The translations under genes were made by a program, and so were the position numbers. Below the pieces are notes generated by a model. The model was given only the letters and a program-made list of their open reading frames with translations, was not told the DNA's origin and did no database searches. Positions 22,516 through 56,622 of a stretch of DNA of 64,000 bases are shown one piece after another. Positions within the stretch are counted from its first letter, which is position 1, and every line of letters begins with the position of its first letter. The stretch comes from Octopus sinensis (Eukaryota): assembly GCF_006345805.1 (NCBI RefSeq), contig NC_042998.1, positions 20,832,001 through 20,896,000 on the forward strand, in the 5' to 3' direction.

Positions 22516-22688
22516 ATGTGTGACTCAAGTGAAGGAAAAATCCACGATCAAGTGAAGGAATATTACGGGAAAACCGTTAAAACAACGGATGACCTAAAGC
22601 TTAGTTCATGCAGTGTATCACTAGGCAAAAGGCTTAGCCCACGGGTAAAGAATGTCATTGCTATGGTCCACGAGGATATCCGTAAGAA
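22516..22688 (+). CDS. AS3MT: AS3MT coding exon 1, downstream copy (MCDSSEGKIHDQVKEYYGKTVKTTDDLKLSSC...VHEDIRK)
   Basis: ATG at 22516, YYG and Cys32 motif, donor GTAAGT at 22689 (phase 2). Confidence 0.88.
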
Positions 22689-30700: not shown

Positions 30701-33700
30701 TGGGAAGCAAGCTTCTTACCACACAGCCATGCCTGCTCCTATGACTGAAACAAGTAAATGGAATTTTATGCATTTCAGCTTATAGGCGCAGGAGTGGCTG
30801 TGTGGAAAGTAGCTTGTCTACCAACCACATGGTTCCGGGTTCAGTCCCACTGCGTGGCACTTTGGGTAAGTGTCTTCTACTACAGCCTCAGGCTGACCAA
30901 AGCCTTGTGAGTGGATTTGGTAGACGGAAACTGAAAGAAGTTCGTCGTATATATGTATATTTATATATATATATATATATATATATTTGTGTGTCTATGT
31001 TTGTCCCCCTCGCATTGCTTGACAACCGATGCTGGTGTGTTTATGTCCCCGTCACTTAGCGGTTCGGCAAAAGAGACTGATAGAATAAGTACTGGGCTTA
31101 CAAAAGAATAAGTCCCGGGGTCGAGTTGCTCGATTAAAGGCAGTGCTCCAGCATGGCCGCAGTCAAATGACTGAAACAAGTAAAAGAGTAAAGAGTATAG
31201 TTCGCAACAACAACATCAGCATTCTTCATAGAACACAGATGCTCCTCAATCAATACTGTGTAGACATATTTGCTAAGGTAGATATTCTTATTTTGTGATT
31301 TCTTCCACAAAATTTCCTTAGCCAGGTCACTAACTATTTACTCCACACATTTCTTCCCTTTCCCGATTGACACTGAATGCCACCGATGGATAAGACACCA
31401 TCAAAAGGAATTGTGTACAGAAGAATATGGCAATCTTCATGACGAAGTAAGACGAAATGATCAGGTTGCTGCTTTGAATATTGGACGTTCTGTCATTCTC
31501 CTATCATCATACACTGAAGGCCCCTAGTACATGCATGAAAAAATGCAGGATGCTCTCACTTATGTCCACCACAGTGGCTGTCCAGATTTTTTCCTCACCT
31601 TCTCTTGTAATCCCAAATGGGTTGACAGCCAGTCTCACTTTACGGCCCAAATACTCCAGATAGGCATGATATCACATCTAGAGTGATATCACATCAAAAG
31701 GCGGCGAGCTGGCAGAACCGTTAGCATGCCGGGTGAAATGCGTAGCCATATTTCATCTGCTGTTACGTTCTGAGTTCAAACTCCGCCGAGGTCGACTTTG
31801 CCTTTCATCCTTTCGGGGTCATTAAATTAAGTACCAGTTATACACTGGGGTCAATGTAATCGACTTAATTCGTTTGTCTGTCCTTGTTTGTCCCCTCTGT
31901 GTGTAGCCCCTTGTGGGTAATAAAGAAACAGATATTACATCTAGAGTGTTTCATCTGAAGTTAATGAAAATGATGGACGTTATAAAACACGGATATGTTT
32001 TTGGACCATTAAGTTGCTTCATGTACACTGTAGAATGGCAGAAAAGAGGACTCCCTCATGCCCATATCCTCCTCTGGCTTCAAAACAAACTCATGTCAAC
32101 AGATATTGACTCCGTTATTAGTGCTGAGCATAGCAATTTAAAAATATCACGATTTTTTTTTTAAAGTTGCCAGATCTTTCATCTACAAAGTTTGTAAGGT
32201 GCTGGAGACTGAAGATGGAAATGTATCACAGCATCAAAGCATAAAAAGCATTTTGAATGCTCTGAAATCATCAGACCACCTGAATTTATCCAGCAAGTTC
32301 AACAGGTCATTGATTACAATCCCAGAAACCATTAAGGTCAATTGCAAAAGATCTCCATGTGTCAGAAGGAACGATCAGAAATGTTGTCCATGAAGACATC
32401 AGATATAAGTCTTATATGATGAGGAAAGGTCAATTTGGCAGAAAAAAGCAAAAGAAAATCACTACATCAGATCTAAAAGGCTCTTAAACAAACTGAAAAA
32501 TCCAGCAATATATTTTTTTGGTTTTTCTCAAACAAGAAAATCTTCGACCAAGATCAAAAAGTTAACAGAAGAAATGACAGATGGTTATGTGCAGACCCTT
32601 CTGAATTTCCAAGTGTTATGCATACAAAATTTCCTGCCACTGTCATAGTTTTAGGGGTTGTCAGCAATAAAGGACATGTGATGCCTCCTTACTTCTTTTC
32701 AGAAGGCCTTTGAGTTAACTCTGATGCCTACATTGAGGTCCTGGAAATAATTGTTAAGTCCTGGATAGACAGTGTATGCAATGGAAGGCCATGTGTGTTT
32801 TAGTAAAACTCTGCACTATCACACATGGCTCCAGTAGCACAGGAATGGATGGCTGAAAATTTTTATGATCACATAACCTCTAACGTTTGGCCTTCTAATT
32901 CCCCAGATCTCAATCCATTCGACTATTACATGTGGAGCATTGTTGAAAGAGAGATCAATGAACACGCCCATAACACCAAAGATTCTTTGAAAGCTGCCAT
33001 AGTCGGAGTAATGTCCAAAATGAATCAGGACCACTTGATTTGAGCATGTAAGCGATTTAGATCTCATATAGAAGCAGTTGTTGAAGCTGAACGTGGCTTT
33101 ATTGAATAACATTATAGAAAAGAAGGTTTATTGTTATTGTCATAGTATTTTTTGATAAAATTATCTGTCATTGTATATCTGGTTTTTTTTTATAAACATA
33201 AATCTCTGTCATTGTATATCTGTTTTTTTCTTATAAACATAAATCTCTGTCATTGTATATCTGTTTTTTTTTATAAACATAAATCTTCCCTGTATATTTA
33301 TATAGATAGATACATAGATGCACACAATCACACCATATATGTATTTTATTCAGATATTATGGATGTGGACTTGTGATTCCTGAAAGCCTGGAAGGTATGA
33401 AGATCCTTGATTTGGGAAGTGGAAGTGGACAAGATTGTTTTGCATTATCAAAACTGGTTGGAGCTGATGGTTATATAGTTGGTGTTGATATGACACAAGA
33501 ACAGGTAAGACAATTCTAGATTATTCTTTTATTTTTCTAGGACTTGGCAATTTTAGTTGTACTCTTGCACAAATTTTGTAAAATGCTGCACTATTTTTGA
33601 TGTGCTCTGAACATGTCCTAATGCTATTAATAACTTGTAGGGACATGATATTTCATTATGCAACTATAATATAATTGGTTGTCTGGAAAGTTTGTGCCGA

Positions 33701-36700
33701 TTTTTAAAGGAAAGAAAAAGGTTAATAAATACTTGCTATTACATTATTAATCAACCAAATATGAACCATTTTGTTGCACAATGCGTTTCCATCTTTCCTT
33801 TAACTTGAAAATACCCTCTTCCCAGAATTGAGGTGGTTTCATGGCAAAGAATTCATCAAGGTGTCTTTTTACATCGTTCAAGGAATTGAAATTTTTACCA
33901 TTAAGACTATTCTGAAGAGACCTGAATAAGTGGAAATCCGAAGGAGCAATATCTGGTGAATATGGAGGGTGGGGTAACACATCCCAGCCGAGCTGCAGCA
34001 ATTTTTGTCTGGTTCCCAAAGCATCAAGTGCCAAAAATGAATTTTCTTATCTTCCATTTTAAAGGGTTACAGAATTAACACAGGTTATAGGAACGTAAAC
34101 CTTCTTCCACGAAAAGATAGCTTAAACTGTGGTCTAAATGGAGGTGTAGTCAAATCCTATTTTATGAACTCAACCATGTTCTAAAATAAGTAGAAAGGTA
34201 AGCTACTATAAATCGGCATGAACTTTCTGGACAACCCAGTACTACAAAGTCTATTAAACGTTTTTATAAGCCAGTGCGCCTCGACTGGCTTCTATGCCGG
34301 TGGCACTTAAAATGCACCAATCCGACCGTGGCCATTGTCAGCGTCGCCTGGCACCTGTGCGGGTGGCACGTAAAAAGCACCCACTACACTCACGGAGTGG
34401 TTGGCGTTAGGAAGGGCATCCAGCTGTAGAAACATTGCCAGATAAGACTGGAGCCTGGTGCAGCCTTCTGGCTTCCCAGATCCCCGGTCGAACCGTCCAA
34501 CCCATGCAAGCATGGAGAACAGACGTTAAACGATGATGATGATGATGATGATGATGATGAGTTCTGTGTTCTCCTATGTTAGCAGTGTTATTACATCACT
34601 TGTTAAGATTGTCTCTACAGATTTTTGTATAGAAATTATAGCCAACACTGAATTTGTTTTAACATTTCATATCTGGCGTCTTGGATATGAAACATAACAC
34701 AATCAATGCTGGCTATAATTTCTATAGAAAATCTGTAGAGACAACCTCAACAAGTGACCCAATGCTACTGAATGTGGCCAGTTGTCCTATGCCAAGTCTC
34801 CATTGCTTTCACAGTAATGTGCTTGCTCCAGCATTCAATCCTCAGAAGAGTAGATGTTGGCAAAAAAAAAAAAAAAAATTTGTTATCTTCAGTTCAGTTT
34901 CCATGCCTATTCTCATCTATGGTCATGAATATTGGGTAATGACTGAAATTGTATTATGTTATACTAGCAGTATCGCCCGGCGTTGCTCGGGTTTGTAAGG
35001 GAAATAACTATATAAGCACTTTTAGAGAGTTATAGCCAAAAAATAGCAAAAAAATGTATTAAAAATGGAAAAAAATGATGGTAAATTTTTTTAAAAATCG
35101 TTGACTCATCGTAGACATTTTTAGAGAGTTACTTCCCTTATATAATAGCGAAAAAATGCATTAAAATGGAAAAAAATGATGGTAAATTTTTTTTTAAATC
35201 GTAGACTCATCGTAGACGCGTGCTAATACCCAGAAGCGCTCGATATGAATCACGACTATAAGTTACCCGGTTTTGGTTAAACTGCACCGCAAAATGTGGG
35301 AGTAGTTAGGAATCTAAATTGTAGGAGACAGACACACAACTTGACTTTTATATATAAAGATTTACAATAATAATAAAGGACGTTAGCGTATACAGTTTTA
35401 CAAACCTAGGACGTTATATAGACCTCCCTGACTCAAGTTAGAGAAGGGATGCGTATTATACACAAGGTTTAGGTTTTTCAGAGGTACAGCCCCCTAAAAA
35501 TCCCCTGCATATTATACTTAAGAGCGGACTATACTCGAGGATTTACGGTACTTACAAGTAAAATTATTCATAAATGCACCTGAATTTCAATGTCATATGC
35601 ATATATTTTTTCTCCTTATTCCAGCTTGATATTGCTAATCAGTATATAGACTACCACACCAAACTCTTTGACTACAAAACCCCAAATGTTAAATTTGTTA
35701 AGGGCTATATTGAGCACCTTACAGATGCAGGCTTCAAGGAAAATTATTTTGACATCATTATGTATGTATACAGACTTTAATTTTAATCACTTCAAAATTG
35801 TATTCCAAAATAATATTTACTGGGGATTCTGTAACCCTTATTTTATATGTCAAAGTTTATATATAGCCCTGAATAGAAAGTGTTCCTTGTTAAGATATTT
35901 TTGCTGGCTGTTTGATCTAACTGTAGAGTGGTTGTTGTTGCTTAGAGCTAAGTTAAATGTTGACTTATAATAAAAGAGTAAACTTGATGGAGTAGGCTCA
36001 TGATAAAAACAGGCTGTTGTTGGAGGTGATGGCAAATTGATCACTGATGTGTAGGATGTGGGCTACAAACCCTTGGCTACACCTGAGCTGATAAAAGTAT
36101 TTTATGTGCATGGCGGCACCATTCAAGCATGGTCGATGCCAGTACCTCCTGACTGGCGCTCATGCTGTTGGTACATAAAAAGCACCCACTACACTCTTGG
36201 AGTGGTTGGCATTAGGACCCTTTTAAAAGTATGCTTCAGTTGTCAGGCAATATACTCTGCATGAGAAGACCTGTTGAGTCAAGTGAAATCGTTGTCGTGG
36301 CCATTGTCAATGCCGCTGACTGGCACCCATTTCGGTGGCATGTAAAAAGCACCATCCAAGTGTGGCCAGTGCCAGTGGCACATAAAATGCACCATTTGAG
36401 CTTGTTGATGTCAGTGCCTCTTGACTGGCCCCTGTGCCAGTGGAACATAAAAAGCACCCACTACACTCTTGGAGTGGTTGGCATTAGGAAGAGCATCCAG
36501 CTATAGAGACCTTGCCAGAACAGATTGGTGCCTGGTGCAGCCTTCTTGATTGCCAGTCCTCAGTCAAACCGTCCGACCCATGCCAGCATGGAAAGCGAAT
36601 GTTAAACGATGATGATGGTATGTAACCTGGTTCAGAATACAACCAATGATTAACTAGTCAATTGTGTTGTAAATGCTTTTATGATGATGATGATGAAGCA

Positions 36701-37477: not shown

Positions 37478-40400
37478 TTGTGTGTCTGTGTTTGTCCCCC
37501 TAGCATTGCTTGACAACCGATACTGGTGTGTTTACGTCCCCGTCACTTAGCGGTTCGGCAAAAAGAGACCGATAGAATAAGTACTAGGCTTACAAAGAAT
37601 AAGTCACGGGGTCAATTTGCTCAACTAAAGGCGGTGTTCCAGCATGGCCGCAGTCAAAATGACTGAAACAAGTAAAAGAGAGTAACTCAAAAGGCGGTGA
37701 GCTGGCAGAACTGTTAGCATGCTGGGCGAAATACGTAGCTGTATTTCATCTGCCGTTATGTTCTGAGTTCAAATTCTGCTGAAGTCGACTTTGCCCTTCA
37801 TCCTTTCAGGGTCGATAAATTAAGTACCAGTTACGCACTGGGGTTGATGTATCGACTTAATCCGTTTGTCCTTGTTTGTCCCCCCTATGTTTAACCCCTT
37901 GTGGGTAATAAAGAAACATATATATGTAACTCATCATCACATGAGTTGATCAATGTATGTCATTCTGGGTTGTCCAATATAATCATTCCTGTGGTTTAGG
38001 ATCCACAAAAGGAGCTCACTCACTAATTTATCTTTGCTTCAATAGCAGTGACCATTATATCTTGTCCTCAGCTCATGAATGATTGATGATGTGTTGGAGG
38101 TATTTCCATAAAGCTCATCTTACATTGGATGTTGTTTCCATGATTTGTTGAGAGCAGCATGCAACATATGTACATAGGTCCCATCAAGCTTGCTTTCTTT
38201 ATTTGTCAGCTAAAATAGCTAAGATAATGCACGGAACGGCGAGCGCGCGCACATGAAGAGATAAAGTACATGATAGCGAACGTAAACATACGTCAGCCGC
38301 TAAAAAGTCCGTGATAGATGTAGGGCAGCTCTACATCATATATTTGCGTTAGCCGTGGGTAGGCAAGCAAAAGTGTGATCGCATATTTGCATCGACCATT
38401 GTCAAGGGGTTAATAATCTGTAATTCATTGATATAATAACAATAATTCGAATAATTTTGATTGTCTTGAGATTTGGTTATATTTAACTCTCTTGGAACAC
38501 TTAGGCTGATTGATTGGCCCAAGCTGAAAGGACTTTGAGGCTGATCCATCGGCCCAATGAAACAAACGTTTTGAAATGTAATAACCAATCAGAGATCATC
38601 TTTCAGTAGATATAATATAAAATTATATAATATATATAATTTTACATACTAATAAAGTAATTCTAAGTACTTTATCCTTTGTTTTCAATATGTACAACAG
38701 GAAAAAATTTTGGTCTTTTTGGCTACACATACCAAAACCCTGTATGTCTCAAAAGGGTTACACATGAAGTACTGACTACTGTCATTTAAGTCTGTTCTAT
38801 ATTGAATGAAGTCCAGGCTTTCTGGGGAGACTTGCATAAGTTGAAAAGGGTGGACAAATTGTTATTCTTAATAAAGCTAATAGAATTTTAACTAATACAA
38901 AATCACAACAAAAGTTTAATGATGGTTTGGATGTGAATTCTGTTTTTACTTTTCATTAATGAAAAATATGAGGAGCTGATAAAATTGCACTTATATTTTT
39001 GGGGAAGACTTGGTCACTTTGAGAACTGCTGATTCAAACACATGAAAGCAAGGGCTTCTAAAATGGTCTCTACAACCACTGGCGGCACCATTTTGGAGGG
39101 AACTGTTGCTGCTATCACATTTGCCAGATAAAAGTGGGTCACTGTCTGTTTGGCAATCAAAATAGCTGGGTCTCTTAAATTTACATTTCTAATCCTTTCA
39201 CTTCTGATGATAGGCCTTTGTGCTTGAAAGGTTACTCAACCTTCATCACATTGCTAGAAGCTCTCTTTTTTCAGTATTTGTTATTTTGCTCTTGTATCAC
39301 AATGCTTCAAGCAAACAACAACACACTACTTTATTCATATCGAAGCTTAATTTCATTTCATCATTTAAAAAAAAAATTATTTGCATATGAAATTAACTTA
39401 CCAATTATGATTTAACAGCCTTCCTACTTACTAAGACTTTGGCTTTGGCTAGGTTAACCCTAAGGACCTCTGATTCTAGACCTTGCTTCCACACCCTAAA
39501 CTTTGTCTCCAGTTCTGGCAGTGACTTGGCTATTAGAGCAAGGTCATCAGCATAGAGGAGCTCCCAGGGGCAGCCTGTCTTGAATTCTTCTGTTATTGCC
39601 TGGAGGACTATAAAGAATAAGAGGGCACAGAGGACTGATCCTTGGTGGACCCCTACTTCTACTTGGAATTCTTCACTATATTCATTTCCAACCCTCACCT
39701 TACTGATAGCATCCTTGCACAGTTCTTACCAGCCACTTGTCTATCCCCAGTTTCTGCATTGACCACCAGATAAGGGATTGGGGGACCCTGTCAAAGGCTT
39801 TCTCCAAGTCAACAAAAGCCAAGTACAGAGGTTTATCTTCGGCTAGATATTTCTCTCCTGCAGTTGCCTTACCAGAAATATAGCATCAGTGGTGCTTCTG
39901 CCTGGCACAAAACTGAACTGCATCTCATCTAGGCTAACTCTCTCCCTAATTAATTGGGCTATGACCCTCTCTGTAACTTTTGTCACCTGATCCAGCAGTT
40001 TGATACCCCTGTAGTTATTTCTATCTAAAGCATCACCTTTTCCCTTGTAGCAGTTGACTATGGCACTGCTGCACCAGTCATTGGGTATGACTCCTTCATA
40101 AACTACCTGATTTACAATGTGGGTGACAAGACCATAACCCACACTGCCCGATATTTTAAGCATCTCTGCAGTGATTCCTGATGGGCCATGTGCTTTCCTT
40201 GTCTTCATATCCTTAATTGCTTTATCTACCTGGGTATTGTTGATTCAGATAGCACCTGGGTACTGTCAGGTGCAAATAAGTGGAATTAATTGTAAAAGCT
40301 ACTGCACCATAAGTATAGTAGCTTTTATGCTTCACTTAATACTGCTGTTCTCAAAATATGAAGTATAATGCATCTATTATATTTTTAACATTAGTAATTG

Positions 40401-43400
40401 TTTCGTTTTTAGATTTGGTTTGCAAGATTCTTTATATGAGTTTGTGTTGAAGCATATTCTCTTGTGTCTGGGGAGAGTCATTTTCTTTTTGTGCCTTATA
40501 ATGTAACACACTCACCAGTAAAATTTCCACTTATTTCTTATTTTTATTTACCTAAAATTTTCGTTGTGTCTTGCAACCTTTTCAGTACTCTTGATAAGAC
40601 ATAAGTGGAAATTTTACCGGTGAGTGTGTTACATTATAAGGCACAAAAAGAAAATGACTCTCCCCAGACACAACAGAATTAGTAATGGTGTTTCAGATAA
40701 AGTCATCTTGTATGTTTGTCTTTATTTTTTAGCTGTTCTATTTTTGAAAATAAAACACTTAATTTGTATTAGTTTTAGCCAAAAACAGGCTAGGCCAACT
40801 AGAATTACAATGCGGGCCACTTTAGTCATAGAAAGTTTTCTGAGGGCTGCTTATATACTGACAGAATTGAAAGCATTTTGCTTTCTCATGCTATTATTAC
40901 AATAATGAATCAATGATCGTTGGTTCAATATGAAATATTATCGTTGCAAAAACAGTACTATCTTTCTTCTTTTACTTTACATTACAATCTTTAATTTTTG
41001 ATGAAATTTTAAAACTGTTTGTTTAAATAAACCCATTTGAAGAAAGTATCAAGTGGGCTGCGAAATACTAGTCTGCGGGCCACATGCAGCCTGTGGGCCT
41101 CAGGTTGGCCAACCCTAGCCTAAAACTTTTCAAAAGCTAGGTGTCTATGTTTTTATTCAATTTATCACCATCTTGAGCTAGACATGAAAGACTAATTTTC
41201 TTTTTTCAAGAGACTGTGTGTGTGTGTGTGTGTATGTGTGTATGTATGCATTTTTCTTTTTTAATTGAGATTTAGCCACCTTTCATTTTTACAGGGTTTA
41301 AATATTCTTTTCTTTTAAATCTTTAAAAAAATTTTTTTTTTTTTAATATCCTGTTAAAATAGGTCTTTCTTCAGTTCAGAAATGTCAGGAGGTTTCATCA
41401 CCTAAAAATTAAAAAATAAAGGTTCTTAGTTTAAAATTCATCTGGAAAATATGCATATATGGAGAAATAAATCATTTATAATTATCTTGATTATAGTGCT
41501 TTGTGTGGAAGCGTGTGGCTTAGTGGTTAGGGTGTCAGCATCATGATCGTAAGCTTGTGGTTTCGATTCCTGGACCGGGCGACACGTTGTGTTCTTGAGC
41601 AAAACACTTCATTTCACGTTACTCCAATCCACTCAGCTGGCAAAAATGAGTAACATTGCGATGGATTTGCGTCCCGTCCAGCTGGAGAACACATACGCCA
41701 TAGAAACCAGGAAACCGAGCCCATGAGCCTGGCAAGGCTTTAAAAGGGCACATTTATTATTATTTATAGTGCTTTGTATCATAAAAGTATTGTCTATACT
41801 TATGAGGTGACAGTTTTTTTTTTATATATATATCTTCATTAAGAAACATTTCTCATGGCCCCAGCAAACAAAATAGAAAAGGTATTGTCCCAATGGCAAA
41901 GAAGATGTGTATACTTTCAGTAAATATGCTGAATTGATATAAGTGAAGCTAAAACATTAATAATTCACAAACTGTAATATAAACAATATATGGCAGCCTA
42001 AACAGAATTCTTTTTGTTTTTTTATGTTTTAATTTTAGCTCCAACTGTGTTATCAACCTGTCAGCTGACAAAAAAGCGGTGTTGGCACAAGCTTATAAGA
42101 TTCTAAAAGTGAGTTTTTGCCTTTATTTAAAAGTATAATCCACTTTTTTTTCCCCAAAATTTAACGGTCAAAATCCCTAGTTGCATATTATATACGAGGT
42201 TAAAAATGAAAATTATTTTCTAAGCAATGTCCGAGTCTCTATTTGCTGTCCGGCAATATTTTATTCAGACGCATTTTGTGATGTCAGGAGCAAAAATACC
42301 TCAAGCTAAGCCTGAAAGCAATGAAGTCATAAAAGGATCATCCAAAACTTGCAGTAACCAATATTTATTAAACGTTATTACTGTTATTACTGTTATTTCT
42401 TTATTTTCTGCAAACAAAATGCACAAAAAAGCTACACGTTTGCATTATGTTATATATACAACTAGCAGTATCGCCCGGCGTTGCTCGGGTTTGTAAGGGA
42501 AATAACTATATAAGCATTTTTAGAGAGTTATAGCCAAAAAAATAGCAAAACAATGCATTAAAAATGGAAAAAAAAATGACGGTAAATTTTTTTTTAAATC
42601 GTTGACTCATCGTAGACATTTTTAGAGAGTTACTTCCCTTATATAATAGCGAAAAAATGCATTAAAATGGAAAAAAAATAATGGTAAATTTTTTTAAAAT
42701 CGTAGACTCATCGTAGATGCGCACTAATACCCAGAAGGGCTCGATATGAATCACGACTATTAAACTGCACCGCAAAATGTGGGAGTAGTTAGGAATCTAA
42801 ATCGTAGGAGACAGACACACAACCTTACTTTTATATATAAAGATAATAATAAAGGACGTTAGCGTATACATTTTTACAAACCAAGGATGTTATATAGACC
42901 TTATTGACTCAAGTTAGAGAAGGGGTGCGTATTATACAGAAGGTTTAGGTTTTTCAGAGGTACAGCCCCCTAAAAATCCCCTGCGTATTATACTCAAGGG
43001 CTGACTATACTTGAGGATTTACGGTAACTGAAATCAGAAACAAATTTTTATACATTTAAACCAAAATGGAATCTATTTGTGTTTTACAAACACTCGCAGG
43101 CATGGCTGTGTAGTAAGAAGTTTTCTTCTCAACCACATGGTTCTGGGTTCAGTTCTGCTGTGTGACACTCTGGGCAGATGTCTTCTACTATAGACCAAGG
43201 CCAACTAAGGCCTTGAGAGTGAAGGATTTGGGTGATGAAAACTAAAAGAAGCCCATTGTATATATATATATATATATGTATATGTGTGTGTATATGTTTC
43301 TGTGCCTGTGCTTGTCCCCCCCCCCCCAAATCGCTTGACAACCGATGCTGGTGTGTTTACATCTCCCGTAACTTAGTGGTTCAGCAATAGAGACCAATAG

Positions 43401-47055: not shown

Positions 47056-50000
47056 GTACATATATACGATGGGTTTCTTTCAGTTTCCGTCTAACAAATC
47101 CGCTCACAAGGCTTTGGTTGGCCCGAGGCTATAGTAGAAGACACTTACCTTGCTCAAGGTACCACGCAGTGGGACTGAACCCAGAACCATGTGGTTGGTA
47201 AGCAAGCTACTTACCACACAGCCACTCCCACGTCTATTGGGAAGCAAAATAGAAAAAACGTATTCTTAAGTAATGATTTATAACTGGAATAGGAAAATTC
47301 AATACCTCCCAATGACCATCATTTTCACTCCTGTATGGGGATGTCAGGCTATCAGGCCAGAGTATATATGATATAACACCCACAAAGTTATCAACCACCT
47401 CACCAACAACAACACTGAACACCTTTTTGATCTCCATGTGTCCAACACACATGGATATGCCTACAAAGTCAGAAAACAACACAGCTCCCATGACTTTCGG
47501 AAACATTTTTTCACGCTCAGAGTTGCTGAAGCATGGAACAAACTGCCTGCGTCAGTTGTTGACTGCCATGACACTGCATCCTTTAAGGCCCTCATGCTTT
47601 CCGAAATCCGCCGAAACTACACCTGATTATATATACACTTTAGATGAGTTGTAGTGCACCTGAGCACTGTACACAATTATTACTATTATTATTATTATAA
47701 CCAGTTTCATGTATTATTGATTTTGGCTTTTCATTGTAATGCATTGGCATATTTTTGCTTGTTCTTGTAACAAATGATTTTTAAATTATTCATCTCTGTA
47801 CTGTTAGGAAGGCGGTGAACTATACTTCAGTGATATGTATGCTGACCAAGAGGTTCCTGCTGATATACGCACAAATAAGGAACTCTGGGGTTTGTATTTC
47901 TTTCTTTCTTTCTTTCATTCATTTTTTTTTAATTTCTCATTCTTAATCATGTAACTCATAATTATCTATTTACTGTCATCATCATCACCATCATCACATA
48001 CCATATGCATGCACTCATGTGCAGAAATGTAAAAATACAAATAGAAGCGTGTAAGAGAGAGAGACATTACAATTTATTATTTACAGAGATGCTCTCGTGC
48101 TGGTGGTATGCAATAAGCACCATTCATGCATGGGTCATTGCCAGTACTGTCTGACTGGCTCCCCGTGCCAGTGGCATGTAAAAATTACCATCAAAATATG
48201 ATCGATGCCAGCCCCGTTGCTCTGGCTGGCTCCTGTGCTGGTAGCATGTAAAAAGCACCATCTGAATGTGGCTGATGCCATTATATGTTTCTTCATTGCC
48301 CACAAGGAGCTAATCATAGAGGGGACAAACAAGGACAGACAAAGGGATTAAGTCGATTACATCGACCCCAGTGCATAACTGGTACTTATTTAATCGACCC
48401 CAAAAGGATGAAAGGCAATGTTGACCTCGGTGGAATTTGAACTCAGAACAATTTGAACTCAGAACATAAAGACAGACAAAATACCTATTTCTTTACTACC
48501 CACAAGGGGCTAAACACAGAAGGGACAAACGAGGACAGACAAACAGATTAAGTCGATTATATTGACCCCAGTGCGTAACTGGTACTTATTTAATTGACCC
48601 CGAAAGGATAAAGGCAAAGTTGACCTTGGCAGAATTTTAACTCAAAACGTAACGGCAGACAAAATATCGCTAAGTATTTCGCCCCATGCTGGAGGCATGT
48701 AAAAAGGACCTGCTACACTCTGAAAGTGGTTGGCATTAGGAAGGGCATCCAGCTGTAGAAACATTGTCAGCTCAGACTAGAGCTTGGTGCAGTCAAAATT
48801 TGAAACCAGTAGTTAATTACACTTGAGGGTAGCGAGTTTGCAACATCGTTAGCTCGCTGACCAAAGTGCTTAGTGTGGTATTTCATGCATCTTTATGTTC
48901 TGAGTTCAAATTCTGTCAAGTCTGACTTTGCCTTTCATCCTTTCAGGGGTCAATACAATAAGTACTAGTTGAGTACTGGGGTTGATGTAATCAACTTACC
49001 TCCTCCCCCAAATTGCTGGATTTGTGTGAAAATTACAAAAAGATATTTAATTATACTTTATTGATTTGTGGGTTTTTTTATTTCAATGTTAGGTACTATA
49101 AATTCTCAGTGTTGATGCTGTGGCACTGTGGGTGATGAACCAAAAGAGAGAGAAAGTGACACAAGGTAACAGGGCAATTTAAGTATCCTTTGGCGTCCAT
49201 GCCGGTGGCATGTAAAAAGCAGCAAACAATCATGGCCGTTGCCAGCCTCCTCTGGCCCTTGTGCCGGTGGCACATAAAAAGCACCCACTATACACACGGA
49301 GTAGTTAGGAAGGGCATCCAGCTGTAGAAACACTGCCAGATCAGACTGGATCCTGGTGCAGCCTCCTGGCTTCCCAGACCCCAGTCAAACCGTCCAACCC
49401 ATGCCAGCATGGAAAATGGACGTTAAACGATGATGATGATGATGTCACTTTCTTTCTCCCTTCCAATGCATCACTCGCTAATGTCCTCTTTCATTTTGGT
49501 GTATCACCTGCTTTATCCACTGATGCTTTTATAAATTTCCAATAAACCCCAATTTTTTTTTAATCCAAAGGTGAAGGCCTTTCTGGGGCACTTTATTGGA
49601 AACAACTCCTAGAACTAACTCAAGAAATTGGATTTAGTCAAGTTCATATTGTCAGCATTTCCCGTATTCCTGTTGAAAGGGAAGATTACAAAAAACTTAT
49701 TGGTAAGAAAGCTTTTTTTATTGTATTTATTTTTTACTCAATTAATTTCTACTTGATTTGTTCCATTATTTAATTGAAGGATATTCTCTGTGTAATCTTG
49801 TGTAAAAAAAAAGTATGGAGTGCAAGTGTAATTTCAATAAAGAACAAAATAAGAATTTTTAACACTAACGTAAAAGGGGTGTTATTGTATGGGGCTGAGA
49901 CATGGCGAACAACAGTTAAGTCAAATAAGCAAATACAATCATTCATCAACAGATGCTTGCGTAGTATGCTTAAAATTAGATGGCCCCAACACAGAAGCAA

Positions 50001-51396
50001 TATGGAGCTATGGCAAAGAACAAATCAAATTTCGATTAGGGAGCAAATATTTTTTAAAAAGTGGAAGTGGATTGGTAGCATAATTAGAAAAGAAACACAC
50101 CAAATGTAGCGAAAAGTGCTTTAAAGTGGAAACCGGTTGGATATAGAAAGAAAGGTAGGCCTAAGAACTTGTGGCGTAGATCAACACAAAAGGAACTAGA
50201 GAAAGGGGGACAGTCATGGCAGAGTATAAGTACAGATGCGAAAAATTATGCAACATGGAATTCAATTATAAGTGGCCTATACTCTGCGTTGGAGGGTTAA
50301 AGGCAGAAAGCAAGAATCTTGTGTATGTATTAAAAAATGATCAGACTTGTCTTGGTGACATACCATTTCCATTAGATGGCTAAAAATGATGATCATCATG
50401 TTTGTTTGAATGCTCACTTTTCTATGCTTGTATGGATTAGATGGGATTATCATGATGATGATGATGGTCACCATCGTTTAATGTCCATTTTCCATGCTGG
50501 CATGGATTCGACATTTTGACAAGAACTGGTCAGCTGGAGAGCTGCACAAGGCTCCATTTATCTGTTTTGGCATGGTTTCTATGACTAGGGTGGGTGTAAG
50601 AGGCCAAATCCTGTCAATCTGAATGTGAGATGGGTAGAATATTTGAGCCCGGTATGACAAGTTCAAATACTAAAGGTTTAAGATGGTAGTGTGTGATTTG
50701 AGGGATAGTTTGTTACTATTTCTAGCAGGGAAATTGACTGCATAGAGGTTTGTCTTTAATTTGTCTATTTTTTAGGTAACTCATTCAAAGGAATTGGTAA
50801 CATTTGCAAAAAATTTATTTGCTTATCCCTGAATAAAATAAATTTTATTTCAAGAATAAAAAAAAATCCCATTCTTTAATTTTTCAGGTAACATAAAGTA
50901 TGCTGCTGTTACATGTCGTCTTTTTAAGTTACCAAAGAATTCCAAACCATCTTCTGCCCAAGTAGTCTACACTGGAGGTATTGTGGATCATGAGGACAGC
51001 CTGAAATTTAGTCGTCACATAACATTCTCTGTAAGTAAATAATTACAAACGAGGCACAGATGGAAATTTATGTAGATTTAAAGTTGTGTATAAAATATGC
51101 AAAACAGTATTTGAAACACTATTATTTTACGTCCATTTCCCTATGTTCTTTTCTTTTTCTTTTCTTTCTTTTACTTGTTTCAGTCATTTGACTGTGGCCA
51201 TGCTGGAGCACCGCCTTTAGTCGAGCAAATCGACCTCAGGACTTATTCTTTGTAAGCCTTGTACTTATTCTATCGGTCTCTTTTGCCGAACCATGAAATT
51301 ATGGGGGCATAAACACACCAGCATTGGTTGTCAAGCGATACTGGGGGCACAAACACAGACACACAAACATCTACACACCACAAACATACACACACA

Positions 51397-51589: not shown

Positions 51590-54500
51590 GATGGGCTTCT
51601 TTCAGTTTCTGTCTACCAAATCCACTCACAAGGCTTTGGTCAGCCCGAGGCTATAGCAGAAGACACTTGCCCAAGGTGCCACGTAGTGGGACTGAACCCG
51701 GAACCATGTGGTTTGTAAGCAAGCTACTTACCACACAGCCACTCCTACTCCTATGCTTACTAATTTGGATGAGCCTCCTCTAGCACAGAATTCCATTATT
51801 TGCTGCAGCTCTTTGTTATCTCCTTCACAACATTGTCTCTTGAGATCAGCTCTCAACATATCTGCCCATTCTTTTTTGGCCTTCCTCTTTCACATTTTCA
51901 TTCTACAGGTTCTTTGCACTTTGATTGCTTGGCACTTCTTTTACCCAATCTCATTCTCCATAAACATCATCATAATCATCATCATTTAATACCCATTTTC
52001 CATGCTGGCATGGGTTGAAGTGTTTGATATGAGGTAGCAACCCAGAGGGCCACACCAAGCTCCAGTTGTCTATTTTGGCATGGGTTCTATGGCTGAATGC
52101 TCTTCCTAACATCAACCCCTTCACAGAGTGTACTGGGTGCTTTTTAGGTGGCGCCAGTACATCTATATTTTTACATGGCACTGGCATGGGTGGATTTTTA
52201 TGCATTGCTAGCGTGGTTGCTCTTTTATGTGACATCAACATCATCATCATCATCATCGTTTAACGTCCGCTTTCCATGCTAGCATGGGTTGGACGATTTG
52301 ACTGAGGACTGGTGAACCAGATGGCTGCACCAGACTCCAATCTGATCTGGCAGAGTTTCTACAGCTGGATGCCCTTCCTAACACCAACCACTCCGAGAGT
52401 GTAGAGGGTGCTTTTACGTGCCACTGGCACGAGGGCCAGTCAAGCGGTACTGGCAACGGCCATGCTCAAATGGTGCTTTTTATGTGCCACCTGCACAGGA
52501 GCCAGTCCAGCGGCACTGGCAATGACCTCGCCCGAATGTTTTTTTCACGTGCCATCAGCACAAGTGCTAATAAGGCGACACGGGTAACGATCACACTCGA
52601 ATGGTGTTTTTAACATACCATTGGCATGGAGGCCAGCTTGTTGCTCTGGTATCGATCTAAATGAGTATGTTTATACTTGGTGCCAGCACAGCTGTTTTTT
52701 TTTTTACATGGCACCAGCACCTTCCTAATGCTAGCCACTTTACACTGTGAACTGGATGCCTTTTTCATGTCACCAGCACTAAAGAGGCTGTCATGCAGTT
52801 TGCGAGACTGTGAACCCTGGGTAAGCAAGACTATGGAACCTTGAGGTAAGACTACAAACCCTAGGGTAGTGGCCTACCTCTTTGGTCATAAGGCTTTTCA
52901 AATGAACCTTTTTTTTTATTTTAATTTTTTCAATTGACCTTTAAATGAGTAAATGGATTTAAATTATTTTCTATTTTCAGTCCAACAAACCTGTGACTGT
53001 TGACGCGGATTTACATGCTATCCTGAAATATTCTCGTTTTGGAGAAAAATTCCAAATTACTGAACAAAATGTAAGTTTTAATGACTTTTAGGGACACCAT
53101 ATTTTGTTATGCAACTATAATATACTACAAGGTCTATTAAACGTTTTTATAAGTCAATACATTGTTCTACTGTGTTAGCAGTGTTATTATTGGGTTGTCC
53201 AGAAAGTTCATGCCAATTTATAGTAGCTTACATTTCGACATAATTTAGAACATAGTTGAGTTCATAAAATAGGATTTGACTATACCTCCATTCAGAGCAC
53301 AGTTTAAGCTATCTTTTCGTGGAAGAAGGTTTATGTTCCTATAACTTGTGTTAATTCTGTAACCCTTTAAAATAGAAGATAAGAAAGTTCATTTTCAGCA
53401 CTTGATGCTTTGGGAATCAGACAAAAATTGCTGCAGTTCGGCTGGGATGTGTTACCCCACCCTCCATATTCACCAGATATTGCTCCTTCGGATTTCCACT
53501 TGTTCAGGTCTCTGCAGAATAGTCTTAATGGTAAAAATTTCAATTCCTTGGATGACATAAAAAGATACCTTGATGAATTCTTTGCCATGAAACCACCTCA
53601 ATTCTGGGAAGAGGATATTTTCGAGTTAAAGGAAAGATGGAGATGCATTGTGCAACAAAATGGTTCATATTTGGTTGATTAAAAATGTAATGGCAAGCAT
53701 CTATTGACCTTTTTTCTTTCCTTTAAAAATCGGCACAAACTTTCCAGACAACCCATTATATTATAGTTGCATTATGAAATATCCCAATACATCACTTAAT
53801 TTCATAATAAAAAGTTCAGAGTTCATAACTTACATTTTATTAAGATTATCTCTAGAGATTTCCTATGGAAATTATAGTCAGCTCTGGATTTGTTATAATA
53901 TTTCATATCCAGAACACCTGATGTAAACATTTCATTGTTTACACCAGTCCTAGCTATAATTTCAATAGAAAATCTCTAGAGATAATCTTAACGAAATGTA
54001 AGTGATGAACTCTGAACTTTTTATTGTGGAATACAGAAAAATATACTCTACATTTTGAGTATATTTACCTATGACATTAATCCACTGTATTATGTTATAT
54101 GTTAATTTATATATTGTCGTAGTATATTATAAAGCAATACTTCTGTCTCTTGAATGTATATTACATGTACACACAAGAAACTTTAAAAAGTGACTGAGTG
54201 GATCATTAGCTTTGAATGAAATACCTATTTCTTTACTAACCACAAGGGGCTAAACACAGAGGGGACAAACAAGGACAGACAAACAGATTAAGTCGATTAC
54301 ATCGACCCCAGTGCGTAACTGGCACTTATTTAATCGACCCCGAAAGGATGAAAGGCAAAGTCAACCTTGGCGGAATTTGAACTCAGAACATAGCAGAAGA
54401 CGAAATACCGCTAAGAATTTCGCCCGGCATGCTAATGTTTCTGCCAGCTCGCCACCTTTGAATGAAATACACTTACATGCACACAGACACACACATGCAT

Positions 54501-56622
54501 ACGTGTGCGAAAGATTTTATGGCATAAAAGCTACATGGGTATATTAGATGCACCCCATTTCAGCCATATTCAGGTGAAAAAGTTTTTTGTTCATTAAAGG
54601 TTGTAATATAGGCCCAACTTTGCACATACGAGGTGAAGTTTTGAGACATTTTTTTTCCCAAAAAATTCTCTTATATGCCATCAAATACATTGTGGGAGTG
54701 TGTAATCACTTCTGTAAGTTTTTTTCATATAAATGGTGAGTCTGATAGGGTCATGTATGCTGTCACAACTCCCTGTCCAAAACCATTCTTCAGGGCACAG
54801 CTGAGGGAGGGCAAAAGAGAGGCACACAGACAAAATCCTGGTTTGATAACATCAAGGACTGGATGGTTCACAACACAGCAAAACCTGCTATGCATGACAG
54901 AGAACAGACTGACTATGAAAGCAACTAGAGTGTCCCCCCCCCCCAATGACTGGCTGCATCAGTTAAGGGATATCTTGATGATGATGAGGCTTCAATATAA
55001 TATTTGAATAATAATAAAATCTTCTACCTTGTGACATATTTAATAACTATCCAATGTATATTTTTACAGGACCAAACAGCTGCAACTGAAAAAGTTTCCT
55101 GTGATGTAAGTATTTAACAAAGTTTCTAACATTTTGTGGGGTTTTAGTCAAATGACTGAAACAAGTAAAGGATTTTATATATATGTATGCATGTATATAT
55201 ATATATATATGAAATTGTAGTTGTGATACTGTGCCGGTGCAATGTAAAAAGCACCATCTGAATGTGGCCGATGCCAGCGCCACCATGACTGGCTTCCATG
55301 CCAGTGGCACATAAAAAGCACCAACCGATCATATATATATATGGATGTAACCCAATTTTAACCTCTGACGAGGCCCTATGGTTATATATATAAGTACCCT
55401 ATTTTTAAATGCCTATAACCTCATTATGTTGACAACTATGGGCACCAATAATAAAAATAAAAATAACTACTTTTAACCATAGGCTGAAACAGCTGTAAGT
55501 AGTGATTTTAATGATTTCAATAATTTATATTATGATTTTTATAATTTGTATTCTTATATGTATTGAATTATAAAATATATATGTATGCTATTAAGGTTCT
55601 TATTTTGTTAAATGAATAAATAATCCAACATTCTAATATCCGAAAGTTGATGAACAAACTAAATTTGTTTCTCCATTTTCTTATTTGTATTATATATATA
55701 TATATCATCATCATTTAGCGTCCGTTTTCCATGCTAGCATGGGTTATATATATATATATATATATATATAGTCAAGCATGACCTCAGAGTGTTGGGCCTC
55801 ACTGAGGCAATGGCGAAGGACCGAGATCTCTGGAGATATGCTGTGACTGCAAAGACCCGGGCTGCTTCCTGCACCAGTCCCGCATAGCCCTTGCCCATTC
55901 AAAGTACCTTGGATTCCAGAACATCCCGCTGTGCTTGAGGAGACCTGTTGAGTCAAGTACATGAACATTGAAATAAATATCAATGGAAATAGTAGTTGTG
56001 ATACCCGTGCCGGTGGCACATAAAAAGCACCATCCGAACGTGGCCGATGCCAGTGCTGCCTCGACTGGCTCCAGTGCCGGTGGCACATAAAAAGCACCAT
56101 CCGAACGTGGCCGATGCCAGTGCTGCCTCGACTGGCTCCAGTGCCGGTGGCACATAAAAAGCACCATCCGAACGTGGCCGATGCCAGCGCTGCCTTAGAT
56201 GGCTTCCGTGCCGGTGGCACGTTAAAAGCACTAACTGATCGTGGCCAATGCCAGACCCCCCTGGCACCTGTGCAGGTGGCACGTAAAAAGCACCCACTAC
56301 ACTCGCGGAGTGGTTGGCGTTAGGAAGGGCATCCAGCTGTAGAAACTCTGCCAGATCAAACTGGAGCCTGGTGCAGCCTCTGGCTTCCCAGACCCCGGTC
56401 GAACCATCCAACCCGTGCTAGCGCAGAAAACGGACGTTAAACGATGATGATGATGATGATGATGATATATAAATGTATATATATTATTGAATATGTATAT
56501 GAATGTATATATAAATAAGTTTTTTTTCTCTTTTTGTTCAGATTACCAATCCATTTGATTTACTCGACAATCAAGAAAAGCAATTAAAATCATCAGGGAA
56601 TTGCTGCAATGGCGCTAACTGA
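22516..56622 (+). CDS. AS3MT: Arsenite methyltransferase, spliced CDS join(22516..22688,33354..33504,35625..35761,42039..42108,47808..47889,49571..49702,50888..51030,52981..53070,55070..55105,56542..56622), 364 aa
   Basis: Manual splice reconstruction: all GT..AG introns, phases 2,0,2,0,1,1,0,0,0, total 1095 nt with no internal stop. The translation has the AS3MT motifs YYGCGLVIP, ILDLGSGSG (SAM binding), GVDMT, GYIE, SNCVINL, GGELYFSD, GALYW, TNPF and a C-terminal CC, collinear with human AS3MT as recalled. Confidence 0.93.
25545..28460 (+). mobile_element. CR1-clade LINE, ORF2 (APE endonuclease plus RT) nearly complete, one frameshift near 25810, (ATT)n tail
   Basis: LSLNARSL, VTETW, VYRPP, AGDFN, NYRPVSLTS, YLDFAKAF, GVPQGSVLGP, YADD, RDLG, VRPHLEFAS, FFTLRVAEAWNKLP; stop at 28386. 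5' boundary approximate; lies in AS3MT intron 1. Confidence 0.93.
29859..30247 (+). mobile_element. Non-autonomous Helitron
   Basis: A|TC...hairpin-CTAG|T, same family as 2798-3187. Confidence 0.85.
31198..32145 (+). pseudogene. Helitron Rep (HUH endonuclease) remnant interrupted by a SINE
   Basis: NQYCVDIFAKV, GRSVILLSSYTEGP, FLTFSCNPKW, RVFHLKL and YTVEWQKRGLPHAHILLWL (HUH motif); stops and frameshifts. Confidence 0.85.
31697..31930 (+). mobile_element. SINE family B representative (central GCCTTTCATCCTTTCGGGGTCGATAAA domain)
   Basis: Other copies at about 16560-16700(-), 24320-24545(-), 24757-24989(-), 37690-37918(+), 48290-48690(-), 48830-49010(+), 54225-54460(-). The central motif resembles the Meta/MESC SINE domain as recalled, not verified. 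Confidence 0.8.
32170..33109 (+). mobile_element. Tc1/mariner superfamily transposase remnant, maT (DD37D)-type
   Basis: FDQDQKVNRRNDRW, VLGVVS..GHVMPP and WPSNSPDLNPFDY; 37 residues between the (mutated) second Asp and the final Asp; in-frame stops. Confidence 0.8.
33354..33504 (+). CDS. AS3MT: AS3MT exon 2 (YYGCGLVIPESLEGMKILDLGSGSGQDCFALSKLVGADGYIVGVDMTQEQ)
   Basis: tttattcag acceptor, gtaaga donor, SAM-binding motif I. Confidence 0.95.
33674..34239 (-). mobile_element. Internally deleted mariner element with TIRs
   Basis: HPPYSPDIAPSDFHLFRSL; about 28 bp TIR TTGGGTTGTCCAGAAAGTTCATGCCGATTT-like; TA flanks. Confidence 0.9.
34272..34560 (+). mobile_element. RTE 3' UTR fragment with (GAT)n tail
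   Basis: Matches 63570-63839. Similar fragments occur at about 36090-36620, 48090-48290, 49190-49443 and 52250-52800 (minus). Confidence 0.85.
34964..35360 (-). mobile_element. Non-autonomous Helitron
   Basis: Reverse-complement termini of the same family. Confidence 0.85.
35625..35761 (+). CDS. AS3MT: AS3MT exon 3 (LDIANQYIDYHTKLFDYKTPNVKFVKGYIEHLTDAGFKENYFDII)
   Basis: Polypyrimidine-ccag acceptor, gtatgt donor, GYIE motif. Confidence 0.93.
37267..37683 (+). mobile_element. tRNA-derived SINE family A, full-length representative (internal microsatellite)
   Basis: A-box TGGCTGTGTGGT, B-box GGTTCAGTCCC, conserved 3' end ...GACTGAAACAAGTAAAAGAG. Other copies at about 1848-2285(-), 6735-6900(+), 6970-7366(-), 16780-16925(+), 25005-25168(-), 29255-29645(+), 30325-30745(-), 30783-31197(+), 43095-43505(+), 44316-44712(+), 44755-45232(-), 45410-45790(-), 46390-47230(-), 51165-51755(-), 58640-59372(+, two copies), 63965-64000(-). 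Confidence 0.88.
39412..40235 (-). mobile_element. Fragment of the same RTE family (RT domain), degenerate
   Basis: MKTRKAHGPSGITAEMLKISGSVG, GVHQGSV and LLYADD match 61164-61950. Confidence 0.92.
40463..40672. repeat. Palindromic MITE-like element, 72 bp arms
   Basis: 40463-40534 is the reverse complement of 40601-40672 with about one mismatch. Confidence 0.75.
41506..41760 (+). mobile_element. SINE family C (tRNA-like head, TTGAGCAAAACACTT body)
   Basis: A-box TGGCTTAGTGG and B-box GTTTCGATTCC; second copy at 4985-5142(-). Confidence 0.8.
42039..42108 (+). CDS. AS3MT: AS3MT exon 4 (SNCVINLSADKKAVLAQAYKILK)
   Basis: ttttag acceptor, gtgagt donor, SNCVINL motif (Cys157). Confidence 0.95.
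42462..42843 (-). mobile_element. Non-autonomous Helitron
   Basis: Reverse-complement termini of the same family. Confidence 0.85.
43649..44045 (+). mobile_element. Non-autonomous Helitron flanked by a 38 bp direct repeat
   Basis: A|TC...CTAG|T termini; flanks 43611-43648 and 44046-44083. Confidence 0.85.
46542..46927 (-). mobile_element. SINE family D inserted into a family A SINE, TSD CTAAGTTA
   Basis: Head TGGCCCAGTGGTTAGGGCAGCGG...GTTTCGATTCC; TSD at 46534-46541 and 46930-46937. Other pieces at 13909-14090(+) and 51432-51546(-). Confidence 0.8.
47375..47698 (+). mobile_element. 5'-truncated copy of the same CR1 LINE (3' end plus ATT tail)
   Basis: Near-identical to 28135-28455. Confidence 0.9.
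47808..47889 (+). CDS. AS3MT: AS3MT exon 5 (EGGELYFSDMYADQEVPADIRTNKELW)
   Basis: ctgttag acceptor, gtttgt donor, GGELYFSD motif. Confidence 0.92.
49571..49702 (+). CDS. AS3MT: AS3MT exon 6 (EGLSGALYWKQLLELTQEIGFSQVHIVSISRIPVEREDYKKLI)
   Basis: T-run then ccaaag acceptor, gtaaga donor, GALYW motif. Confidence 0.92.
49790..50300 (+). mobile_element. Old RTE-clade LINE C-terminal fragment (different family)
   Basis: IRIFNTNVKGVLLYGAETW, FINRCLR..LKIRWP, KWKWIG and GRPKNLW; frameshifted. Confidence 0.8.
50888..51030 (+). CDS. AS3MT: AS3MT exon 7 (NIKYAAVTCRLFKLPKNSKPSSAQVVYTGGIVDHEDSLKFSRHITFS)
   Basis: ttttcag acceptor, gtaagt donor, RLFK and QVVYxGGI motifs. Confidence 0.92.
52981..53070 (+). 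CDS. AS3MT: AS3MT exon 8 (SNKPVTVDADLHAILKYSRFGEKFQITEQN)
   Basis: ttttcag acceptor, gtaagt donor, AILKxSRF motif. Confidence 0.9.
53190..53756 (+). mobile_element. Internally deleted mariner element, same family
   Basis: Same TIRs and YSPDIAPSD motif; TA flanks. Confidence 0.9.
55070..55105 (+). CDS. AS3MT: AS3MT exon 9, 36 nt (DQTAATEKVSCD)
   Basis: tttttacag acceptor and gtaagt donor, phase 0/0. Sequence is poorly conserved, so support comes mainly from the splice signals. Confidence 0.65.
55365..55497 (+). ncRNA. Degenerate hammerhead-like motif with long stem II
   Basis: CTGACGA, GGCCCTATGGTTA pairing with TAACCATAGGCT, GAA, palindrome ACAGCTGT, then A. Stem I has only about 2-3 bp. 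Confidence 0.45.
55770..56465 (+). mobile_element. 5'-truncated RTE (last codons plus 3' UTR plus GAT tail)
   Basis: VKHDLRVLGLTEAMAKDRDLWRY resembles the end of the 62 kb ORF; shares the 3' terminal sequence. Confidence 0.85.
56542..56622 (+). CDS. AS3MT: AS3MT last coding exon (ITNPFDLLDNQEKQLKSSGNCCNGAN*)
   Basis: Long polypyrimidine tract then cag; ITNPF resembles the human ITDPF motif; terminal CC; TGA at 56620-56622. Confidence 0.88.
   Translation: MTNPFDLLDNQEKQLKSSGNCCNGAN

Follow-up and report, generated by a model that had tools for sequence, protein, structure and literature searches.

The 64,000-nucleotide stretch of Octopus sinensis DNA analysed here (NC_042998.1, positions 20,832,001 to 20,896,000; hereafter the window, with positions counted from its first letter) contains a complete gene for a paralogue of the arsenite methyltransferase AS3MT, in which the fourth conserved cysteine of the family is replaced by glycine (Gly207). 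Our results indicate that this protein is very probably functional and belongs to a recurrent class of animal AS3MT paralogues, here called Gly-type, in which the same Cys-to-Gly change is accompanied by a small set of second-site changes. The octopus gene was already annotated; the new part is the Gly class and its convergent signature, of which no description was found in the open-access literature. Reviews assign four conserved cysteines to every such enzyme (PMC6138428), and in a survey requiring three of the four, positions 72, 174 and 224 were conserved in every retrieved sequence (PMC5552862). Databases give both the Gly type and the Cys type the name 'arsenite methyltransferase'.

The sequence of the window is repeat-rich and eukaryotic. 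The Gly gene consists of ten coding exons on the + strand, from 22516 to 56622 (CM016860.1 20,854,516-20,888,622; Table 1), its nine introns are all GT-AG, and the spliced product is 100% identical to the 364-amino-acid NCBI model 'arsenite methyltransferase-like [Octopus sinensis]'. A human AS3MT sequence served as probe for locating exons only; the gene was then built from splice sites and checked by exact spliced alignment. Positions 49571-49600 read GT GAA GGC CTT TCT GGG GCA CTT TAT TGG, giving the peptide WGEGLSGALYW across the junction of exons 5 and 6, with the Gly205 codon split by the intron (47889, the last base of exon 5, plus 49571-49572). The Gly207 codon, GGC at 49576-49578, stands at the position of human Cys206 and of Cys224 in CmArsM, the enzyme of Cyanidioschyzon merolae. 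In phmmer alignments to solved structures, Gly207 fell opposite the Cys of LWGEC in human AS3MT (8xt7), of LYGEC in CmArsM (4fr0/4kw7) and of LLGEC in Chlamydomonas ArsM (5evj), while Cys62 and Cys157 matched their counterparts. The loss of the fourth cysteine, which the initial annotation had read from the sequence, was thus confirmed by the full gene model and the structure alignments. The remaining cysteines that it listed (Cys32, Cys62, Cys157, Cys258 in the motif VTCR and the C-terminal CC pair at 359-360) are all present, and its description of the gene as otherwise intact is borne out by the splice sites and the identity with the NCBI product.

The AlphaFold2 model of the protein had a predicted local distance difference test score (pLDDT) of 92.5 and a predicted template modelling (pTM) score of 0.92. 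Its top Foldseek match was human AS3MT 8xt7 (template modelling (TM) score 0.94, root-mean-square deviation 2.1 Å), followed by CmArsM and CrArsM, and the next-best methyltransferases reached a TM score of 0.62 or less. Homology was detected at expect values of 2.5e-92 to human AS3MT 8xt7 and 5e-69 to CmArsM, and animal AS3MT proteins dominate the match list. The S-adenosylmethionine (SAM) motifs YYG, DLGSGSG.D, DM, GYIE, D151 and SNC are all in the protein. Of the four cysteines that define AS3MT (CysA to CysD), A, B and C are represented by Cys32, Cys62 and Cys157, and D, human Cys206/CmArsM Cys224, is Gly207; because CysD is absent, the protein is filed here as an AS3MT-family paralogue and not as a canonical arsenite methyltransferase. 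Among the Pfam families of class I SAM methyltransferases (Methyltransf_31 / _25 / _11), PF13847 was matched with 109.6 bits against a cut-off of 27. With the NCBIfam model NF008823 'arsenite methyltransferase', a bacterial subfamily model with a cut-off of 263 bits, the Gly copy scored 163 bits and the canonical octopus Cys copy 176 bits. This model has no discriminating power for animal proteins, and NCBIfam cut-offs were rejected as a membership test because the canonical copy also scores below. Compared with human AS3MT (8xt7), the Gly protein shows 46% identity over the modelled region, the same three-domain fold and SAM motifs, and equivalents of Cys32, Cys61 and Cys156. However, it has Gly for Cys206, Tyr for Phe252 and Ala for Ser254, the latter two being invariant in the aligned Cys-type proteins, as well as fewer C-terminal cysteines and a faster evolution than Cys-type AS3MT. 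Homology to CmArsM (4fr0, 4fsd, 4kw7) extends over the full length, and Gly207 aligns with Cys224; in the crystals, both As(III) and phenylarsenite are bound by Cys174 and Cys224.

A canonical Cys copy lies 15.4 kb downstream of the Gly gene on the same strand, just beyond the window, in agreement with the earlier suggestion that the Gly gene is a paralogue. The same order was found in Argonauta hians, with the Gly gene upstream of the Cys gene on the same strand and a spacer of 7.9 kb. The A. hians Gly protein, also with WGEG, is the top non-self match (75% identity in the search table, 72% in our own alignment). The two octopus copies are 62% identical, and internal exon sizes do not differ between the octopod Gly and Cys paralogues. 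Coding sequences of both genes were taken from the genomic loci of both species: the Gly copies have GGC at codon 207 and TGT at codon 258, and the Cys copies have TGT and a Tyr codon (TAT/TAC), respectively. Between Octopus and Argonauta, the Nei-Gojobori estimates of nonsynonymous (dN) and synonymous (dS) divergence were dN 0.166, dS 0.769 and dN/dS 0.22 for the Gly copy, and dN 0.092, dS 0.925 and dN/dS 0.10 for the Cys copy. Identity of Gly with Cys copies was 0.62/0.62/0.59/0.61, with no within-species excess over between-species values, indicating that no gene conversion has taken place between the octopod copies since the genera split, and dS between the two copies is saturated (1.3-2.2). 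The tandem AS3MT pair is therefore older than the Octopus-Argonauta split, and the Gly gene is real, old and under purifying selection, though looser than that on its Cys neighbour. That the true codon is TGC and the glycine a sequencing or assembly error, as the initial annotation had allowed, is next to impossible. GGC is one base away from TGC, and the window does hold one assembly gap (100 N, 9529-9628) and a suspicious near-identical duplication around exon 1; but A. hians, another genus with an independent assembly, carries the same GGC together with Tyr253, Ala255 and Cys258, and dozens of further species have Gly at the site.

Mutually exclusive exons, an idea drawn from Mizuhopecten isoforms X1 (Cys) and X2 (Gly), were rejected, since those two proteins differ over their full length (80% identity) and the window has a single exon-6 homologue. 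The upstream neighbour in Argonauta, a RAI16-like gene, was sought in the window and gave repeat matches only. The public models of the canonical Cys copy seem mis-predicted in Octopus bimaculoides, where two proteins both have unrelated insertions in place of exon 5, and in A. hians, where an extra upstream exon lengthens the model by 46 residues at the N terminus. No Gly copy of O. bimaculoides turned up in the database.

Glycine at the fourth cysteine was found throughout animals. Among the 120 best database matches, the Cys206 column held Cys in 106 and Gly in 14, and the columns of Cys32, Cys62 and Cys157 were invariant. In an exhaustive search, 26 of the 150 best 50%-identity cluster representatives had Gly and 104 had Cys, so that Gly made up 26 of the roughly 138 with a residue at this column; residues other than these two were confined to distant homologues that were without other hallmarks too. 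When 162 homologues keeping Cys62, Cys157 and Trp204 were considered, the column contained Cys (121), Gly (41) and nothing else. The holders of Gly included molluscs (oyster, scallops, freshwater mussels, planorbid snails) as well as tunicates, a ray, a sawfish, lampreys, ranid frogs, Nematostella and Seison. When Gly-type proteins served as queries in two extra searches, further holders came to light in corals, octocorals, Actinia, a nemertean, an annelid, hemichordates, a crinoid and a sea urchin and, among vertebrates, many anurans, sharks, a chimaera, sturgeon, gar and essentially all teleosts. By our own trees, about 20 animal lineages have a Gly-type copy, and both copies are present in 23 species of a 101-sequence sample. 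No amniote Gly copy appeared in the match lists, no dedicated amniote survey having been made. Many of the Gly sequences are automatic gene predictions; expression in other species is seen for the zebrafish member, zgc:153372 (LOC767695, Q08C90; 'uncharacterized protein' at NCBI), in complementary DNA clones and transcript contigs, and the bullfrog Gly copy was found on many short transcript-like contigs.

Two suggestions made earlier have to be seen in the light of this distribution. Glycine could have been common in invertebrate orthologues with normal activity; it is common (14/120; 26/~138), but it sits in second copies beside a Cys copy. The high organoarsenic load of a marine animal does not hold as explanation, because freshwater snails, freshwater mussels, frogs and zebrafish have Gly copies as well.

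In the 18 Gly lineages first defined, Cys32, Cys62 and Cys157 are kept in 18 of 18, and so are the SAM-pocket columns D77, G79, G81, G83, D85, D103, M104, E138, S155, N156 and D186; Q108 and D151 are kept in 17 of 18. Cys-type proteins have 48 columns with a conservation of 98% or more, and 33 of these never vary in the Gly lineages. The outlier columns each change to one target residue: 207 C->G in 18 lineages, 253 F->Y in 11, 60 Y->F in eight, 255 S->A in seven, 158 V->T in four and 160 N->C in three. The enrichment of F253Y in Gly lineages had a Fisher p of 5e-12, computed with the Cys-type sequences treated as independent, which they are not, and S162C occurred in 7 of 18 Gly lineages against 6 of 121 Cys-type sequences. 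We defined the Gly-type class, which is a construct of this analysis and corresponds to no curated family, by Gly at CysD with CysA, CysB, CysC and Trp204 kept and at least one companion change among Y253, A255, F60, C160 and C162. The octopus and Argonauta copies belong to it with G207, Y253 and A255, a triple shared with Clavelina, Seison and Diadema, and the old vertebrate clade has F60, C160, C162, G207 and Y253. The planorbid Gly copies (Biomphalaria glabrata, Bulinus truncatus) read LWCEG, with a new Cys two residues upstream, and carry Cys162; the new Cys looks like a relocated ligand.

Several of these columns can be placed in one pocket. In a human model, the residues within 5 Å of SAM include 57-RYYG-60, 155-NCV-157, 160-LV-161 and C206 (PMC3790734), from which it follows that columns 60, 158, 162 and 207 line the same pocket. 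Tyr253 is the first residue of a strand (253-261) in the AlphaFold2 model. The last strand of class I methyltransferases is antiparallel and starts at the active-site edge of the sheet. By this topology, we infer that residues 253 and 255 face the same way near the active site; Cys258, five residues on, would point to the opposite face and is unlikely to reach the site. Cys258 had been proposed as a stand-in ligand, along with Cys337 and Cys359-360, and none of these candidates was retained. Cys258 is also present in Cys-type rays and missing from most Gly copies, apart from its position five residues into a β-strand. Cys337 is not conserved in Argonauta, where it is His, and the CC pair is a general family feature, found in 105 of 120 proteins.

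The Gly-type copies appear to have many separate origins. Kimura-corrected distances were used for two bootstrapped neighbour-joining trees, one with 52 sequences and column 207 removed (tree 1), the other with 101 sequences and all eight convergent columns removed (tree 2). The cephalopod Gly and Cys copies were monophyletic with 96% bootstrap in tree 1 and 99% in tree 2, and within them the octopod Gly pair splits off before the octopod Cys copies part from two cephalopod-like transcripts (96-98%). Gly and Cys copies of the same lineage paired with bootstrap values of 100 in Nematostella, Dimorphilus, Clavelina, Ostrea, pectinids and unionids, 98 in Oculina/Stylophora, 97 in anurans, 92 in Dendronephthya and 68-77 in planorbids, and one old vertebrate Gly clade, from lampreys to teleosts, had 98%. 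A single old clade of all Gly copies was rejected, with a bootstrap of 0% for all-Gly monophyly, and Fitch parsimony on a 162-sequence tree counted 18 state changes. Repeated duplication followed by the same Cys-to-Gly change is the simplest reading of these sequence trees. A single origin in early animals, with the lineage pairs produced by gene conversion between neighbours and selection guarding the key sites only, would account for the preferential retrieval of Gly-type proteins from distant phyla by a Gly-type query, for the tandem arrangement of some pairs (octopods; Dimorphilus by adjacent gene numbers) and for the one old Gly clade that vertebrates do hold. However, we think it quite unlikely: same-lineage pairs kept 97-100% bootstrap with the convergent columns removed whereas all-Gly monophyly had none, the octopod copies show saturated dS between them and no within-species excess of identity, the octopus exons are scattered across 34 kb, and the Gly copies of Ostrea and Nematostella have no AS3MT neighbour within 10 kb.

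Unlike in octopods, the Gly copies of Pristis pectinata (sawfish), Nematostella and Ostrea edulis thus stand apart from other AS3MT genes at this distance; that of P. pectinata adjoins a ubiquitin-specific protease gene, and that of Nematostella is flanked by a globin gene and a gelsolin-like gene. The two Gly copies of planorbid snails do not always pair together in trees.

The same active-site changes arising many times suggest a specific new function and not decay. With regard to what that function may be, previous work showed that three thiols are needed for As(III), two for methylarsenite (MAs(III)) and one for dimethylarsenite (DMAs(III)), and that human C156S and C206S had no activity on either As(III) or MAs(III), whereas only the first step was lost in C32S and C61S (PMC3877260). 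In the disulfide-cascade model, the C-terminal Cys pair holds the arsenical, the N-terminal pair gives the electrons, and DMAs(III) is held on a single Cys (PMC6138428). We propose that the Gly-type protein would remain a SAM-dependent methyltransferase with thiol chemistry on a metalloid. Its pocket would be one sulfur ligand short, the smaller Gly would leave room, and Tyr253 would bring a hydroxyl to where Phe was. Cys157, with or without Cys62, would grip the substrate, and Cys32/Cys62 would give the reducing disulfide. Since the thiol requirement falls from three to two to one and the pocket has one ligand fewer, already alkylated substrates seem the most likely, namely MAs(III), DMAs(III) or larger trivalent organoarsenicals, and the Gly copy may follow the Cys-type enzyme beside it in the pathway instead of replacing it. 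Such substrates would fit with the retention of a Cys copy alongside and with the faster yet constrained evolution of the Gly copy. This later-step mechanism is put forward tentatively, as a possibility that falls short of being probable; if it is taken as one with membership in a functional Gly class, we lean slightly towards the whole. The altered mechanism or substrate suggested in the initial annotation is still the most reasonable reading of an intact gene that lost its fourth Cys, although for the function itself we infer from sequence.

Several points weigh against the later-step mechanism or the picture that surrounds it. Human C206S is completely inactive on As(III) and on MAs(III) (PMC3877260), and residue 224 of CmArsM is essential to both methylation steps (PMC7563989); by analogy with C206S and Cys224, the Gly copy would be dead on these two substrates at least. 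In 9 of 11 pairs, the Gly member has evolved faster than its Cys counterpart, and the dN/dS of the octopod Gly copy is twice that of the Cys copy; relaxed constraint would also give both results. The octopod copy is without the extra Cys160/162 of many Gly copies, so the mechanism may not be uniform across the class. Our trees are distance-based only, and strand topology and co-variation are the grounds for placing residues 253 and 255 near the arsenic-binding pocket.

A rival view is that the Gly protein is a non-catalytic relic or pseudoenzyme, which has lost methylation and either keeps a binding, buffering or regulatory role or is in slow decay. The inactivity of Cys206/Cys224 mutants and the faster evolution of Gly copies, with a dN/dS double that of the Cys copy, speak for it. 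However, dN/dS of 0.22 at dS of about 0.8 means clear purifying selection; the three cysteines and the SAM-pocket columns are kept across 18 lineages (Q108 and D151 in 17), as they need not be in a protein that has ceased to bind SAM or a metalloid; loss of function would scatter residues at the site, where only Gly is seen and second-site changes recur; and the vertebrate Gly clade has been maintained from lampreys to teleosts. We consider a pseudoenzyme unlikely on these grounds. Somewhat less unlikely, though still improbable, is an ordinary arsenite methyltransferase that holds As(III) on Cys32, Cys62 and Cys157, helped in other species by Cys160, 162 or 205, with a changed ligand geometry. 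The three remaining cysteines equal the As(III) requirement, many Gly copies gain Cys160/162 beside the SAM pocket, and the planorbid WCEG shifts the Cys by two residues. Yet octopod copies have no relocated Cys at all, the use of all three thiols as ligands would leave none for the reducing disulfide of the cascade model, and redundancy is hardly expected beside a Cys-type copy in 23 sampled species. The substrate might also not be arsenic but another soft metalloid or a thiol or selenol (Sb, Bi, Se, Te, small thiols), for which a pocket with one sulfur ligand less and a Tyr hydroxyl more could be suited; we hold this very unlikely, because the strict keeping of the three AS3MT cysteines and of the fold implies the same kind of chemistry.

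Some known systems can be compared with the Gly class. CmArsM C224A (5jx7) is an engineered loss-of-function mutant, whereas the octopus loss is natural, conserved, always to Gly and accompanied by recurrent second-site changes. Zebrafish zgc:153372 also has Gly at the site and Tyr253, falls into the functional class defined above, and is expressed; however, it is part of the old vertebrate clade with Phe60 and Cys160/Cys162 and no orthologue of the octopod copy. A precedent for dedication to alkylated trivalent arsenicals is found in the organoarsenical ArsMs of bacteria, i.e. BgArsM for arsinothricin and the ArsM of the arsenosugar pathway (PMC8552651; NF040538, NF038099). Unlike the octopus copy, BgArsM keeps all four cysteines (PMC8552651), and the octopus Gly protein is no member of these families, as its scores lie far below the NF040538 and NF038099 cut-offs (125 vs 500 and 74 vs 400 bits, respectively). 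Three-Cys microbial ArsMs are natural relatives that also have three of the four cysteines; they are without CysA, the first, N-terminal cysteine and a redox partner, and keep both arsenic ligands, the reverse of the Gly class, in which CysA is kept and CysD, an arsenic ligand, is gone. For the three-Cys enzymes, MAs(III) is reported to be a better substrate than As(III).

Current accounts place the origin of the tri- and tetra-alkyl arsenic compounds dominating in seafood at the base of the food chain or in microbes (PMC4284695; bioRxiv 10.1101/2023.04.05.535637). Gly copies would bear on this origin if methylated arsenicals are indeed their substrates. That Gly-type copies are the animal enzymes for late arsenic alkylation steps is a rather unlikely proposition at present. 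If true, dimethylated or trialkyl trivalent arsenicals would be their substrates and trimethylarsine oxide, tetramethylarsonium or arsenobetaine/arsenocholine their products, and aquatic animals would make part of these compounds themselves, beyond the supply from food and microbes. The seeming lack of amniote Gly copies, as judged from match lists only, would then agree with the excretion of amniotes, which is dominated by dimethylated arsenic (DMA).

Table 1. Coding exons of the Gly-type AS3MT paralogue in the window
Feature	Position	Strand	Content
Coding exon 1	22516..22688	+	Met1 to first two bases of codon 58; Cys32 TGC 22609-22611
Exon 2	33354..33504	+	YYGCG with Tyr60 and Cys62 (33364-33366); SAM motif I ILDLGSGSGQD; columns conserved in all Gly lineages
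Exon 3	35625..35761	+	GYIE; Asp151 (SAM pocket)
Exon 4	42039..42108	+	SNCVINLSADK; Cys157 42046-42048; Asn160 and Ser162 unchanged, Cys in many other Gly copies
Exon 5	47808..47889	+	EGGELYFSD ... ELW; last base opens Gly205 codon
Exon 6	49571..49702	+	(G)EGLSGALYW; Gly207 GGC 49576-49578
Exon 7	50888..51030	+	GNIKYAAVTCRLFK; Tyr253 TAT 50899-50901; Ala255 GCT 50905-50907; Cys258 TGT 50914-50916
Exon 8	52981..53070	+	C-terminal domain
Exon 9	55070..55105	+	36 nt; Cys337 (His in Argonauta)
Exon 10	56542..56622	+	CC pair 359-360; stop codon 56620-56622

Around the first coding exon, a 725-bp segment is present twice in direct orientation (17926-18650 and 22442-23166, 98.9% identity), and the predicted product of the upstream copy would read MRDASEGK... 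in place of MCDSSEGK.... Between the two copies lie two pairs of near-identical inverted segments, 18651-19271 vs 19955-20573 (99.4%) and 20735-21190 vs 21970-22440 (96%). The duplication could be a local rearrangement with an alternative first exon, or two haplotypes assembled serially.

Positions 14247-15940 are taken up by a 1.7-kb (TA)n microsatellite with about 860 repeat units, and it is the cause of the dip in GC content to 0.13 over the same positions. Two reverse-transcriptase-like open reading frames, at 39405-40208 (− strand, in intron 3) and about 62340-62603, with the motifs FVPGRSTTDAIF... and YADDLALIA, are fragments of non-long-terminal-repeat retrotransposons, and the one at about 62340-62603 has a counterpart in the Argonauta locus. 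Repeats of the window, of about 400 bp, have many copies at the locus of the neighbouring gene, with 80-93% identity. A short interspersed repeat, whose translation contains ...STHYTHGVVGVRKGIQL..., occurs throughout the introns (e.g. 21226-21380, 49190-49327 and 56241-56342); it is also present in loci L001 and L002 and is common to Argonauta.

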